The notes under the pieces were generated by a model. The model was given only the letters and a program-made list of their open reading frames with translations. It did no database searches and was not told the origin of the DNA. Shown piece after piece: positions 2,711-60,697 of a stretch of 64,000 nucleotides of DNA; position 1 is the first letter of the stretch, and every line of letters begins with the position of its first letter. Position numbers and translations under genes: made by a program. The DNA is from Octopus sinensis (Eukaryota): NCBI RefSeq assembly GCF_006345805.1, contig NC_043005.1, positions 24,738,001 through 24,802,000 on the forward strand, given 5' to 3'.

Positions 2711-3057
2711 GGCTACGAGCTGGCAGAAACGTTAGCACGCCGAGCGAAATGCGTAATCGTATTTCGTCTGCCGTTACGTTCTGAGTTCAAATTCCGCCGG
2801 GGTCGACTTTGCCTTTCATCTTTTCGAGGTCGATTAAATAAGTACCAGTTACGCACTGGGGTCGATGTAATCGACTTAATCCGTTTGTCTGTCCTTGTTT
2901 GTCCCCTCTAGGTTTAGCCCCTTGTGGGTAGTAAAGAAATAGGTATTTCGTCTGTCTTTACGTTCTAAGTTCAATTTCCACCGAGGTCAACTTTGCCTTT
3001 CATCCTTTCGGGGTCGATGAATTAAGTACCAGTTGCGGACTGGGGTCGATCTAATCG
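2711..3057 (+). mobile_element. SINE A dimer (head-unit-tail2-unit)
   Basis: tRNA-like A box GGCAGAAACGTTAGC and B box GAGTTCAAATTCC; restart at GGTATTTCG at 2942. Confidence 0.9.
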
Positions 3058-4007
3058 AGAGAGAGAGCGAGAGAGAGAGGGGAGAGAGAGCGAGAGAGAG
3101 AGGGGAGAGAAAGAGAGAGAGAGAGAGAATGTTCTACCTTTACAATTACTGATGCAATCCACCTTTAGGACATCTATAATGCTTTTTTCGACCCTGTTTC
3201 ACTCTCAATTCATGGATCCATCCGAGGCTATAGATAGTGACACATCTCCCGCGATGCTACGCAGTGGGATCGAACCCAGGACATCATAGTTACAAAGCAA
3301 ACTACTGTAGGTTGCCCATACACATGCTAACACACACATGCTAACACACACACACACACACGCATAAATGTGTAGGTATGTTGTATATTTACAGCAGTGT
3401 AAGGTAGGTAAAGAGGCAAATATGTATGTATGTATGTATGTATGTATGTATGTATGTATGTATGTATGTAGGTAGGTAGGTAGGCAGGTAGGTAGGTAGG
3501 TAGGTAGGTAGGTAGGTAGGTGGGTAGGTAGGTATGGAGGTAGGTAATTAAATTATGTAAATTGATTACACGGCACATTCTTTTTCAGATGCTTAGAACG
3601 AAATCTGCTTGGAAAAGAAACGCCCTTGGGTTACCGTGTTTGACAATTAAGGGATATTTTCTTGATATTTCGCCAGAATTATTTTGTACAATATGTAAAT
3701 AATTGAAAATGGTTGTTACATACTCTCCTATTGATGTTTCTACCGTTCCTTTTCTGTTTGTACTTTCTTTATATATATATATTATATATATATATAATAT
3801 ATATATATATATATATATCTTATACATCTGTTACCCCCCACCTTTCGTCTGTCATTTCCTACATTTTATCTTCAACACATTCATTTTCCACCCCGCCACA
3901 AAATATCCCTGTCTCCTCCTCAAAATTGCCGACACTTTTTCTTGTTCAGTTGATTTCGTTTAAAATTTTTCAATTAATTAAAATACTCTGGAATGGCGCC
4001 CAATCAC

Positions 4008-4592
4008 TATTCTTTTCTACTTTAGGTACAAGGCCCGAAATTTTGGGGGGAGGAGGTGCAGTCGATTAGATCGACCCTAGTACGCAACTGGTACTTAATT
4101 TATCGACTCCGAAAGGATGAAAGGCAAAGTCGACCTCGGCAGAATTTGAACTCAGAACCTAAAGACAGACGAAATACCTATTTCTTTATTACCCACAAGG
4201 GGCTAAACATAGAGTGGACAAACAAGGACATACATAGGTATTAAGTCGATTACATCGATCCCCAGTGCGTAACTGGTACTTAATTTATCGACCCCGAAAG
4301 GATGAAAGGCAAAGTCGACCTCGGCAGAATTTGAACTCAGAACCTAAAGACAGATGAAATACCTATTTCTTTATTACCCACAAGAGGCTAAACATATAGT
4401 GGACAAACAAGGACATACATAGGTATTAAGTCGATTACATCGACCCCAGTGCGTAACTGGTAGTTAATTTATCGACCCCGAAAGGATGAAAGGCAAAGTC
4501 GACCTCGGCGGAATTTGAACTCACAACGTAACGACAGACGAAATACCGCAAAGCATTTCGCCCGGCGTGCTAACGTTTCTGCCAGCTCGCCA
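4008..4592 (-). mobile_element. SINE A trimer (head, two tail2 units, final tail1 unit)
   Basis: Three units of about 185 bp with junctions at 4178/4179 and 4363/4364. Confidence 0.9.
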
Positions 4593-6041
4593 TCTTTGGC
4601 GCCCAATTACTATTGCTCGTTCATGATGGGAATCATCTTTTGATGGAACCATTTCGTTTTCCTCACAAAAATTTACCATTATTTTGGTGAGATTCCTAAT
4701 CAGTCTGTTAGATCGCTCGTCTACTCTCAAAGAGTTCCTTCACCCTCCTTCTTTCTTTTTCATTTCGTACATCCAAAGCAACCCTGCCGAGTAGTGTTAA
4801 TCGTCTTCACATGCCTACATACGTTAATACGATGATGAGTGGTAAGTTTACAATCGATTACATCTACCGTCAAGTGATTATCCTCGAAATAGGAAAGATA
4901 ACATTGTCTTAAATGAGATTGGAATTCAGAACCAAAACGTATGTGTAACTAAATACTGCAAAGCTATATTGGTTTTCCACACAACAATTACAGTCTTAAT
5001 GCTTTCTAATTTAAGTACAATACAAGCAGTTCTGAGAGAAGAGGTTAGTCGATTCCGATGACTTCTGTATTCCTCTTTTATTGAATTTTATCGATCGCTG
5101 AAAGGATGTAAGACAAATCTGACGCCGATAACAAACGCAAAACGTAAACGCTACGCAACTAGTCACTGCAAAGCATTTTGTACGTCATTCTTACAGATTC
5201 GCTAATCCATCTCCACCCTGCAATAATCGTTTTTTATTTAGGCACAAAGCTTAAATTTATTTAGCCACGCCTATGCCTTTACGTTCTGCGTTCATATCCT
5301 AAAGACGTCAACTTTGCCTTACAACCTACCAGGGTCGATGAAATTATGTACCAACCGATTACAGATTCGATATAATCGATTAAGCTCTTCCCCAAATTTA
5401 AAGTCGTGGGTCTATGTTAGGAAAATGGCGGTCCTTTGAGTAAATCGTTTGAGCGCATTTAATTACGGCTCTTTACATTCTGAGCTCAAATACTGCCGCG
5501 ATCAACTTTGAGTGGGATTACATCGACACTAGGTTTTGACTGATGCTTATTTTATCGATCCTTGAAGGACGTGAATTAAAGTTGACCGCAGTGGGGTTTG
5601 AATTTACAACATAAAGAGTTGGAACAAATGCTCTAAGGGAATTTTTTTTCCGCAGCCGCCTTCTTCAGCTTAGCATGAAGAAAGATAACAAGATGCTCTT
5701 CAGCACTACCGGTTCTTTTACATGATTATCACAATCACAAGGCTCTCTAATTTAGGTAGAGGGCTCGTTATGAAAGGTGGTGGGAGTTTACGCGATTCTA
5801 TTGCCCTCAGATTAATACTTCATTTTATGATCCCCGATAAGATGAAAGGCAAAGTTGATCGCGGCACTATTTGAGCTCAGAATGTAAAGAGCCGTAATTA
5901 AATGCGCTCAAACGATTTACTCAAAGGACCGCCATTTTCCTAACAGAGACCCACGACCTTAAATTTGGGTAGGGCTTTCAGGGTAGGTTGTAAGGCGAAG
6001 TTGACGTCTTTAGGATTTGAACGCAGAACGTAAAGGCATAA

Positions 6042-6515
6042 GAGTGGCTGCGTGGTAAGTAGCTTGCTTACTAGCCACATGGTTCCAGATTCAGTCCCAC
6101 TGCGTGGCACCTTGGGCAAGTGTCTTCTACTATAGCCTCGGGCCGACCAAAGCCATCTGAGTGGATTTGGCTGATAGAAACTGAAAGAAGCCCGTCGTAT
6201 ATATATATATATATATATATATATATATATATGTGTGTGAGTGTGTGTGTGTGTGCGCGCGCGTGTGTGTGTCTGTGTGTGTGTGTCTGTGTGTATGTTT
6301 GTGTGTGTGTGTTTGTCTCCCCAACATCGCTTGACAACCGATGCTAGTGTGTTTACGTCTCCGTAACTTAGCGGTTTGGCAAAAGAGACCGATAGAATAA
6401 GTACTAGGCTTACAAAGAATAAGTCCTGGGGTCGATTAGTTCGACTAAAAAGGCGGTGCTCCAGCATGTCTGCAGTCAAATGTCTGAAATAAAAGAGTAA
6501 AAGAGTAACGATTCT
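6042..6515 (+). mobile_element. SINE B, full length (tRNA head, CORE-like CCTTGGGCAAG block, internal microsatellite)
   Basis: GGCTG(T/C)GTGGTAAG A box, GGTTCAGTCC B box, internal (TA)n(TG)n, tail GTAAAAGAG. Confidence 0.9.
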
Positions 6516-58882: not shown

Positions 58883-59118
58883 TCGTGTGTTCAGAAAGTC
58901 ACTCCGCAGTAACTATTTAATGGTTTTGGGGTGATTTTTGTACACTGATCCTTTACTTGCTTCTCAGAAAAAAAAAAGTCTGGCGGTGATAAATCAGGTG
59001 AGATTGGTGGCCAAAGTCCTTTCGAAATAATCCGTTCACCGAAAAGCTCTTGAAGTAGCTCCATGGTGATGCGCAATTTGAATAAAAATCACTGCGGAGA
59101 GACTTTTTGAAAACCCTG
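58883..59118 (-). mobile_element. Small internally deleted Tc1/mariner-superfamily element
   Basis: Imperfect TIRs of about 27 bp (..TTCAGAAAGTCACTCCGCAGT / ACTGCGGAGAGACTTTTTGAAAACCCTG-TA); internal ERIISKGLWPPISPDLSPPDFF. Confidence 0.7.
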
Positions 59119-59332
59119 TACTGACTAGAAATAATTTTGTGGCGTGCAAAAAAAAAAAAAAAAAAAGGGCAGTCTTAAATGATTTTGAACATAATTTAAC
59201 CTAGAATCTCGCTGTTCTGCGAGTTTATTATCGATTTGGCAGGCATCAGCACGCATCAGTAAATAATCTGTTTTGCTGAATTCTGTAAACCAAAGCCACC
59301 ATTTTTGTTTAGTTCCATCGATTTGACGTTGG

Positions 59333-59378
59333 CTTTGACTGAAGAGAGACAACCAGGTCGAAACATCGGTGTCTAAAG
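59333..59378 (+). ncRNA. Type I hammerhead ribozyme motif (CUGAAGA core)
   Basis: CTTTGA-CTGAAGA-ga GAC aaccag GTC-GAAACA tcgg TGTC-TAAAG. 3-bp stem III; predicted GUC cleavage after 59373; stem I has one bulge. Confidence 0.55.
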
Positions 59379-60074
59379 TTCTACGTCAGTTAACTGTCGC
59401 GTTCACGAAGGTTTATTGGTATCTGTTGGGGCACGACAGGTTTCCCGAAGTTAATGTTAGCGTTACCTTTTATCTTTTCTGGGCCGATAACATAAAGTAA
59501 AAAGTACCAGTCAGATACTGGTGTCGATGGCATCCGCTAAGCCCTTCCTTTAAAACTGCTGGCCATATGATTAAATTAGAAACAATTATTACACCCACAC
59601 ACATACACGCACGCATACGCACACGCACGCATACGCACACGCACGCATGCACACACACACGCACACACTCAAACAAACCTACACACACGCACACACACAT
59701 ACACACCCCACACACAGCTCCATAACAGGATATACTACACACCCGCTTATCATGTACTGAATTAATTATTCTTTTCTGTTCTCGGCACAAGGACTATCCC
59801 CCTTATGGGCAAGGGGGATAGGCGATTACATCGACCTCAGTACTAAACTGGTACTTATTTTACCGACACCCAAAGGATGAAAGGCAAAGTCGACCTCGGC
59901 GGAATTTGAACTCAGAACATAAAGACTGACGAAATACCACTAAGCATTTCGTCCGGCGTACTAACGTTTCTTAATTCTTTATTGAAATTTGAATTCAGAA
60001 CGTAGCGACGAGCGAAATACCGCTAAGCATTACGAATTTTTTGCCAGCTCACCGCCTTACTACTAATAATAATG

Positions 60075-60697
60075 ATCTTTTCTACTCTAGGCACATGGCC
60101 CGACATTTTGGGGGAGGGGCCAGTCGATTAGTTGACTCCAGTACGCAACTTGTACTTAATTTATCGACTCCGAAAGGATGAAAGGAAAAGTCGACCTCGG
60201 CGGAATTTGAACTTAGAACTCGGAATTTGAACTCAGCATTTCGCCCGGCTTGCTAACGTTTATGCCAGTTCGCCGCCTTAAATATTTATTTCTTTATTGC
60301 CCACAAGGGACTAAACAGAGGGGACAAACAAGGACAGACAAACGGATTAAGTCGATTACATCGACCCTAGTGCTTAACTGGTACTTAATTTATCGACCCC
60401 GAAATGATGAAAGCAAAGTCTACCTCGGCGGAATTTGAACTCAGAACGTAGCGGCAGACGAAATACTTATTTCTTTACTACCCACAAGGGGTTAAACACA
60501 GAGAGTACAAACAAGGACAGACAGACGGATTAAGTCGATTACATTGACCCCAGTGCGTAACTGGTACTTATTTAATCGACCCCGAAAGGATGAAAGGCAA
60601 AGTCGACCTCGGCGGAATTTGAACTCAGGACGTAGCGGCAGACGAAATACCGCTAAGCATGTCGCCCGGCGTGCTAAAGTTTCTGCCAGCTCGCCGC
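60075..60697 (-). mobile_element. SINE A dimer followed by a separate monomer
   Basis: Junction at 60467/60468; the tail2 end near 60290 abuts a new head. Confidence 0.88.

Follow-up and report, generated by a model that had tools for sequence, protein, structure and literature searches.

Young copies of an octopus SINE appear to insert at one exact site in the heads of resident copies of the same superfamily

Introduction

Mobile elements of the R2, Tx1 and R1 type have a precise 3' junction at one sequence of a multicopy target, which may be another mobile element, as for Tx1L, which inserts inside the Tx1D transposon. On the R2 template, downstream target sequence carried by the RNA helps to position initiation, and R2 has internally deleted derivatives. 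Tx1 and R1 are site-specific clades with APE-type endonucleases (PMC6007223), and among the long interspersed nuclear elements (LINEs) of Octopus vulgaris, in which short interspersed nuclear elements (SINEs) account for approximately 11.6% of the genome, L1-Tx1 and Dong-R4 are listed as recently active (PMC13282606). Here, we analysed a window of 64,000 nt of Octopus sinensis DNA (assembly GCF_006345805.1, contig NC_043005.1, positions 24,738,001 to 24,802,000 of the forward strand), in which copies of a SINE superfamily, SINE A, form head-to-tail arrays that contain units with a particular tail, T2, and restart at a fixed nucleotide. The T2 copies share with the R2/Tx1/R1-type elements the precise junction and the multicopy target, but differ from them by a target within their own SINE superfamily, by a partial specificity (10 of 16 ends, with solo copies at look-alike sites), by a 5' joint that is hidden by homology and by a partner LINE that is only presumed here.

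In the Gobi jerboa, the Dip/B1 multimers cited in PMC10702118 similarly consist of new copies on resident SINEs in the same orientation, joined head to tail up to several units. According to the description given there, they are built of full-length SINEs, whereas the octopus insertion lies inside the head, leaving internal units headless and in exact register. Dimeric and trimeric SINEs derived from master copies, such as Alu and the tRNA-unit dimers and trimers cited in PMC4758252, have in common with the octopus arrays their multiple units, a single head promoter and a target site duplication (TSD) around the whole. They do not have the threefold divergence gap within a copy, the last units that form no clade and the combination of modules of different subfamilies. 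Truncation points vary in U6-LINE-1 chimeras. In the octopus arrays, the truncation point is fixed to the nucleotide (10 of 10 joints) and the partners differ in age, whereas the general layout, a 5' partner complete to its own 3' end and a 5'-truncated 3' partner, is that of these template-switch products (bioRxiv 10.1101/2025.02.02.635956). The SINE-derived satellites of squamate reptiles are also tandem units of 150-185 nt from part of a SINE (PMC10702118); unlike these, the octopus arrays are short (2-3 units), dispersed and equipped with a complete head and tail, and they apparently owe their formation to retroposition, not to a tandem locus that was amplified. No description of the octopus arrays was found in the searched literature, which omits most subscription journals and Repbase.

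Results

Array structure and junctions

The DNA of the window is AT-rich (33-43% GC) and crowded with a single SINE superfamily, of which more than 40 copies were located within the 64 kb by mapping of consensus pieces (H, U, T1, T2 and T3) combined with reading of the individual copies. The elements are modular and consist of a head H (~48 nt), a unit U (~116 nt) that contains the B-box/core, and one tail of the types T1, T2 or T3 (Table 1). In the arrays, the T2 terminus directly abuts the start of a further U. The corresponding sequence AAAGAAATARGTRTTTC was found exactly 10 times (2933+, 4171-, 4356-, 7110-, 15663-, 23678+, 33640-, 33824-, 41537+ and 60460-), in comparison to an expectation of 0.15 from 100 shuffles, none of which gave even 3; chance or low complexity as the origin of the junctions is thereby excluded. 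All ten junctions of the form AAAGAAATA|RGTRTTTC that the original prediction had listed are present, as are exactly six T2 ends elsewhere (6946, 26951, 49816, 51039, 56531 and 60287). The restart always occurs at the same nucleotide, as had been claimed, namely G48/G49 of the element, with an uncertainty of 1-2 nt in the T2 end (AAATA or AAATAR). Tandem Repeats Finder (TRF) independently reported arrays with a period of 183-185 at 4060-4547, 33527-34014 and 60280-60650.

The predicted architecture, head-[U-T2]n-U-T1 with n = 0-2, describes arrays 2711, 23456 and 41329 (n = 1), arrays 4008-4591 and 33479-34062 (n = 2) and the H-U-T1 solos (n = 0). Two points have to be added: 6946-7352 and 60287-60697 are of the form H-U-T2-U-T2 and thus end in T2, and 15555-15857, which counts as n = 1, is 5'-truncated and has a T2-type last unit that lost its tail. 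The T2b end of array 6946-7352 adjoins an older SINE at position ~15 of its head, and a complete T1 SINE (60076-60277) follows 8-9 nt beyond array 60287-60697. In array 2711, a (GA)n/(GAGAGC) microsatellite (3059-3130, +) takes the place of the T1 tail and begins right after ...CTAATCGA.

The restart point had been placed between the A and B boxes. Its position is fixed, but the boxes are motif-level similarities read by eye (A-box-like TTAGCACGCCGGG in H, B-box-like GAGTTCAAATTCC in U): ARAGORN detected no tRNA in the window, and Rfam gave no match at E<=1 in 23400-24100. The copies are short, dispersed and numerous, and include 5'-truncated solos and TSDs of variable sequence (8-22 nt), all hallmarks of SINEs. 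The sequence CTTTCATCCTTTCGGGGTCGATAAATTAAGTACC appears to resemble the MIR/CORE core. A CORE central domain is known from the octopus SINEs OR1 (cited by PMC4824008) and OR2 (cited by PMC4758252).

A peptide derived from the SINE consensus was 96% identical to a 'hypothetical predicted protein' of O. vulgaris, and the locus of this protein, a 20-kb stretch of chromosome OX597819.1 (L019), carries a solo SINE copy. This stretch contains only one tailed SINE A copy plus one diverged unit fragment, a SINE density far below that of the window. Searches with the SINE core pattern gave 0 matches in prokaryote genome contigs and in viral contigs, while the T2-end pattern had 18 chance matches in metagenome contigs, none of them with a SINE.

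Table 1. Consensus pieces, subfamily marks, arrays, solo copies and unoccupied sites of SINE A; positions are those of the window, except for L019.
Feature	Position	Strand	Composition or sequence
Head H consensus			~48 nt, GGCGGCGAGCTGGCAGAAACGTTAGCACGCCGGGCGAAATGCTTAGCG
Unit U consensus			~116 nt, GTATTTCGTCTG...GAGTTCAAATTCC...GGGGTCGATnTAATCGA
T2 tail, 3' sequence			...CCCCTTGTGGGTARTAAAGAAATA
Tail T1, example	23803-23854		
Tail T2, example	23620-23686		
Tail T3, example	15367-15415		
Subfamily a/a2 marks			CCGTTTG, GATTAAATAAG
Subfamily b marks			ACCTATG, TTGTGAG
Subfamily c marks			GGGCAATAAAG
Array, n = 1	2711..3058	+	H 2711-2758 (T2-solo-like head GCGTAATC), U1 2759-2874, T2 2875-2941, junction 2941/2942, last unit 2943-3058
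Array, n = 2, with TSD	3994..4614	-	H 4547-4591, U1 4431-4546, T2a 4364-4430, U2 4246-4362, T2b 4179-4245, U3 4062-4177, T1 4008-4061; T2 subfamily b
TSD of trimer 4008-4591	4597-4614 and 3994-4011		AATAGTrATTGGGCGCCA, 18 nt, 17/18 identical
T2-ended dimer	6946..7352	-	H 7301-7352, U1 7185-7300, T2a 7118-7184, U2 7013-7116 (3' part deleted), T2b 6946-7012
5'-truncated array	15555..15857	-	partial H 15843-15857, U1 15738-15842, T2 15671-15737, U2 15555-15669 (T2-type, tail lost)
Array, n = 1	23456..23854	+	H 23456-23503, U1 23504-23619, T2 23620-23686 (= consensus), old last unit 23688-23802, T1 23803-23854
Array, n = 2	33479..34062	-	H 34015-34062 (TTTGCAG type, as T1 solos), U1 33899-34014, T2a 33832-33898, U2 33715-33830, T2b 33648-33714, old U3 33531-33646, T1 33479-33530
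Array, n = 1	41329..41700	+	H 41329-41376, U1 41377-41492, T2 41493-41545 (c-type, internal deletion), old last unit 41547-41658, T1 41659-41700
T2-ended dimer, discordant modules	60287..60697	-	H 60651-60697, U1 60535-60650 and T2a 60468-60534 (a2-type), U2 60352-60466 and T2b 60287-60351 (c-type)
Solo full-length T2 SINE	26724..26951	+	head GCGTAGCC; 3' flank TATGTTTCAG
Solo 5'-truncated T2 SINE, subfamily b	51039..51243	-	TSD GTTTGAGG; 3' flank GGTTTGAGG
Solo 5'-truncated T2 SINE, subfamily b	56346..56551	+	perfect 20-nt TSD GGTAGACAGTACGCTAAAGT (56346-56365, 56532-56551)
Solo 5'-truncated T2 SINE, c-like	49691..49816	+	within TA/TG microsatellite
Solo T2, a2-type	L019:10145-10375		22-nt TSD; annotated there as part of a 116-aa 'hypothetical protein'
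Unoccupied resident T1 solo, H-U-T1	18379..18593	-	site GCGGTATTTCG intact
Further unoccupied SINE sites	4547, 6698, 15090, 15843, 23503, 34015, 34246, 41376, 41762, 42361, 59938, 60021, 60651		

Age and subfamilies of the units

If T2 copies had been nested independently into residents, the T2-linked units should be the younger ones, as the original prediction had pointed out. Age was assessed in six arrays by non-family differences, i.e. positions with a state that is not common in any of the classes T1, T2 and T3. These amounted to 27/1367 positions (2.0%) in the T2-linked units of the arrays and to 43/688 (6.2%) in their last units (Fisher p = 1.8e-6), with similar values in T2 solos (2.8%) and T1 solos (6.6%). 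In 6/6 arrays, the last unit was more diverged than every upstream U-T2 module, for instance with 8 differences versus 1 in U1 of array 23456, 9 in U3 versus 1 and 1 in the upstream units of array 33479-34062, and 12 versus 4 in array 41329. Counts of tail singletons followed the same trend. The polarity is unambiguous, with young sequence 5' and old sequence 3'; in array 41329, where the differences of the last unit begin at positions 3 and 15, the old part starts no more than 3 nt from the joint. An apparently clean stretch in the first 18 nt of the last units, considered as a sign of a joint inherited by read-through, was rejected as a counting artefact, given that T1 solos show the same deficit.

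In pairwise comparison, T2-linked units differed from each other by 7.1% on average, last units by 15.0% and T1 solos by 17.0%. Because the last units are as far as 15.0% from each other, close to the value of the T1 solos, they do not form one clade, and no composite-specific states are common to them. The T2 tails and the units ahead of them, on the other hand, fall into at least three coherent subfamilies (a/a2, b and c). These are represented by solos as well: a by 26724, a2 by the L019 copy, b by 51039 and 56367, and c by the c-like copy at 49691. Discordant subfamily pairs, another expectation of independent nesting, are exemplified by array 60287-60697 with its a2 module followed by a c module (junction AAATA|AGTATTTC), while the modules are concordant within 4008-4591 and 33479-34062. 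Units that are each other's closest relatives and have private changes in common, as in a satellite, were seen in 4008-4591, but neither in 60287-60697 nor for the last unit of 23456, 33479 or 41329.

Target site of T2

The T2 terminus, ...AAAGAAATA or one nucleotide further, is set by TSDs of 20 nt (56367), 22 nt (L019) and 8 nt (51039) and is a true retroposition terminus. In 10/16 cases, T2 ends at GGTATTTC of a SINE. A similar motif was found outside the arrays: for the seven non-array T2 ends, of which six lie in the window and one in L019, the following 8 nt match GGTATTTC at 30/56 positions, compared to 14.8 +/- 3.3 at random sites, and 0/20000 resamplings reached 30 (p < 1e-4). By eye, the consensus after solo T2 ends reads RRTATnT, whereas no GGTATTTC-like motif was seen by eye at T1 and T3 ends. 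T2 therefore has a target preference of its own, for which the start of U is the best match. Most T2 insertions share a target and a precise 3' junction, as is characteristic of site-specific retroposition, but with a specificity that is only partial.

The motif on its own is not enough, because the exact sites outside SINEs and those of T3 SINEs are all empty: albeit with small numbers, 10/24 SINE-borne sites are filled, in comparison to 0 of ~9 exact RGTATTTC sites outside SINEs and 0/5 T3 SINEs, in which the site reads GGCATTTCG. A 12-nt tandem repeat, AGTATTTCAGAC x4, at 40314-40361 (+) offers the T2 target motif four times and carries no T2 insertion.

Where H passes into U, the two together contain a 13-bp inverted repeat, CGGGCGAAATGCT/TAGC/GGTATTTCGTCTG, that is present in every intact copy (e.g. 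18522-18560(-) and 23485-23518(+)) and folds as RNA into a hairpin of -16 kcal/mol (z = -3.15). It lies between the A-box-like and the B-box-like motif and is not a canonical anticodon arm. The restart point of the arrays coincides exactly with the boundary between its loop and 3' arm, and the site lies in the sequence GCTTAGCGGTATTTCGTCTG. Furthermore, the T2 end and the U start are palindromic (GAAATA-GG-TATTTC). Judged from these sequence features, the hairpin boundary and the palindrome may point to recognition of a structure. A small hairpin with the loop CTTGT is also common to T1, T2 and T3, whose stem is CCC/GGG in T2 instead of the GGC/GCC of the other two tails. A compensatory change of this kind hints that related partner LINEs recognise a conserved structure.

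Three simple explanations of the joint were considered. Priming via the 3' end of the T2 RNA on the nicked strand was rejected, as GAAAUA has the same sequence as the primer strand instead of its complement; the strand with which it could pair is the top strand, hence the palindromic joint. A deletion between two GAAAT motifs was rejected too, since it would give ...GAAATGCTTAGCGG..., which was never seen. As for a landing of T2 beside T1 copies already 5'-truncated at that nucleotide, none of the solos is truncated there.

Head types and the 5' joint

Heads ending in GCGTA(G/A)(C/T)C occur in the T2 solos 26724 and 51039 and in array 2711. The TTTGC(A/G)G type of head is found in 4008-4591 and 33479-34062 and, apart from these two arrays, only in T1 solos; the remaining arrays carry the common GCTTAGCG head that is also present in the L019 solo. 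The first unit of 33479-34062 is of the T1 type (GTCTTTACG), those of 2711 and 41329 are of the T2 type (GCCGTTACG). According to the original prediction, the 5' homology of the incoming element to its target makes the upstream junction seamless. The mosaic of heads and units is consistent with this, as it is what a 5' joint resolved by homology at variable positions would give; the mode of resolution itself is only presumed. The GCGTAGCC head was rejected as a universal T2 marker, since it is lacking in the L019 solo.

Discussion

The age gradient within the arrays, together with the target motif after solo T2 ends, suggests that young T2 SINEs probably retropose into resident SINEs at one exact site of the head, a reading that we favour over pre-formed masters without regarding it as proven. 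T2 would be a young and active subfamily (H-U-T2) with a preference for residents of its own superfamily, namely T1-tailed copies and other T2 copies. Its incoming 3' end (...GTARTAAAGAAATA) would be linked to the first nucleotides of the resident U (GGTATTTCG), presumably by target-primed reverse transcription of the T2 RNA from a nick at the H|U boundary, and the 5' end of the new DNA would be joined to the resident head or unit by homology, with neither a visible scar nor a conventional TSD. Since the incoming copy carries H and U itself, its 5' end meets perfect homology in the resident, which would account for a scarless joint. The product, H-[U-T2]-U-T1, would regenerate the site twice, and a repetition at the head site or at the T2|U site would lead to n = 2. 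The specificity might come from a partner LINE with a selective endonuclease, from the hairpin as a recognised structure, or from pairing of T2 read-through RNA with the resident U, in the manner of R2 templates; in the latter version, T2 transcripts would extend into the downstream U (GGUAUUUC... extension). The original claim that a T2 RNA inserts site-specifically into SINE A heads is in line with the identical joints, the ages, the subfamilies, the solo motif and the TSDs, whereas the nick, the 5' resolution and the reason for the site choice are its conjectural elements.

The simpler alternative, which had been raised together with the original prediction, is that the T2|U fusion arose a few times and that whole dimers or trimers were then retroposed via their T1 (or T2) tail, resulting in several composite subfamilies. 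The TSD around the whole trimer 4008-4591 would fit such masters, as would the abundance of arrays relative to solos and the concordant modules within 4008-4591 and 33479-34062, and changes that appear private within 64 kb are not demonstrably private genome-wide. The TSD is, however, expected under both explanations, as under nesting it would be the TSD of the old resident T1 SINE. Masters would give parts of equal age, and the unequal ages therefore disfavour them: the unit-T1 part is three times as diverged as the T2 part of the same copy and equals the T1 solos. Last units that are 15% apart and lack composite-specific states, mixed subfamilies, and the same target motif at solo T2 copies also speak against masters, of which at least four to six with already decayed T1 parts would be required, i.e. 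a recurrent formation of the same joint. We thus consider this origin unlikely. Equal ages are likewise predicted if each array is a single insertion of an RNA-level chimera, similar to U6-L1, formed when the reverse transcriptase is halted by the head hairpin (or by a modified base) and jumps to the 3' end of a T2 RNA. A 5' partner that is always complete to its exact 3' terminus, a breakpoint at a strong hairpin and the low divergence of the heads would agree with template switching, which also permits discordant modules. But the T1 donor RNAs would have to stem from old, decayed source copies, the heads of 4008-4591 and 33479-34062 are of a type otherwise restricted to T1 solos, and a polymerase moving 3'->5' reaches the hairpin before its 3' arm, not after. 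In addition, the end of the nascent cDNA is not complementary to the T2 3' end, and the solo T2 target motif is left unexplained, which makes such chimeras quite improbable.

A spread at the DNA level, in which one ancestral T2|U joint is copied among dispersed SINEs by unequal crossing-over or ectopic gene conversion via U homology, would account for seamless joints on both sides and for the old T1 parts. Unequal recombination is the favoured mechanism for SINE-derived tandem repeats in reptiles (PMC10702118), and array 4008-4591, with a middle unit that is a U3/U1 chimera and two T2 tails with common private changes, indicates that the process did operate in one array. That it is the main driver is very unlikely, given that the transfer of a 184-nt heterology into about a third of the residents by ectopic conversion would be implausibly frequent. 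Moreover, the last unit of 41329 carries old differences from position 3, the module subfamilies match actively retroposing solos, T2 ends have TSDs, and the solos show the motif.

Several observations nevertheless weigh against site-specific nesting as a general explanation. The two T2 tails of trimer 4008-4591 share the private changes A15 and A31, seen nowhere else, and its U2 is chimeric: up to position 37 it has the changes that are private to U3, and beyond, towards the 3' end, it is of the T2 type. This looks like unequal crossing-over in a dimer or like re-insertion from one source, and unequal crossing-over fits the trimer better than two insertions. The claim that arrays grow by self-nesting is consequently favoured for arrays in general, with local unequal crossing-over as a second route that would add units at least in 4008-4591. 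The heads of the arrays are 3.1% diverged, between young and old (44 nt per copy), so that a purely resident head is not demonstrated. The partner LINE was not found in the window, where the T2 tail occurs only attached to U, and the 3' end of the T2 RNA is not complementary to the strand that would prime at the site, so that such pairing does not explain the specificity. Finally, the sample comprises eight arrays in one SINE-rich window and one solo outside, and if every array represented a composite subfamily of its own, changes that look private in the last units might recur across the genome.

If confirmed genome-wide, the arrays would be a clear case of a SINE that prefers copies of its own family as a landing site with single-nucleotide precision. 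This would point to target-selective LINE machinery in cephalopods, provide a route from interspersed repeats to tandem arrays and illustrate how a mobile element spreads while host genes are spared. Arrays of mixed age distort repeat annotation, subfamily consensus sequences and repeat-age landscapes, and they confuse 'transposition in transposition' chronologies. More tentatively, T2 might be self-targeting in a wider sense: it would recognise the point in the hairpin at which the A-box head meets the B-box unit, through a selective partner LINE or read-through RNA, and the scarless 5' joint would place a fresh U-T2 behind a resident head as a new transcription-competent source (promoter capture). 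The residents would then serve as a 'safe harbour' of junk DNA, arrays could seed satellites, and a related habit might explain the frequent T1 ends 13-16 nt upstream of SINE heads. We regard this extended scenario as possible, yet rather doubtful.

Neighbouring repeats

T1 tails ending at 147(+), 6753(-), 23854(+), 34077(-), 41700(+), 42193(-), 46601(-) and 60076(-) and T3 tails ending at 8708(-) and 6551(-) lie close to or inside the heads of SINEs in the same orientation. In total, 8/17 T1 tails end 0-16 nt upstream of, or in, the head of another SINE and 2/7 T3 tails about 23-27 nt upstream of one, with ~0.1 expected by chance; in the pair 94-147/162-378, the spacer is the TSD of the downstream element. 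This tail-to-head adjacency suggests that the same nick was used again or that SINE 5' ends attract insertions in general. A tandem pair is also formed at 47169-47715 (+) by another SINE family that is unrelated to SINE A (~390 nt, GTGGCTGTGTGGTAAG..., containing a microsatellite); here, a 3'-truncated copy (47169-47323) adjoins a full copy (TRF period 155).

At 29886-27170 (-), a SINE head with ~20 nt of U passes straight into a fragment that resembles a LINE, with a CCHC knuckle of ORF1 and a region similar to an endonuclease; its frame is continuous over 28318-27170 save for four internal stop codons, and the translation of this part had no homologue at E<=1e-10. Within 26065-27170, the solo T2 SINE 26724-26951 interrupts an open reading frame (ORF), 26332-26745, that appears transposase-like by eye. 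Homologues of ORF 15999-16382(-) carry the mariner-type transposase domain PF01359, the closest being 82-85% identical and from non-octopus sources, and related ORFs extend to about 17034. Homologue searches with the mariner ORF and with the LINE fragment returned no octopus proteins, and the exact look-up of one window ORF yielded no record. Two 5'-truncated T1 copies at 12087-12223 (-) and 12210-12370 (+) are inverted head to head with a common breakpoint in U, an arrangement similar to the products of twin priming.

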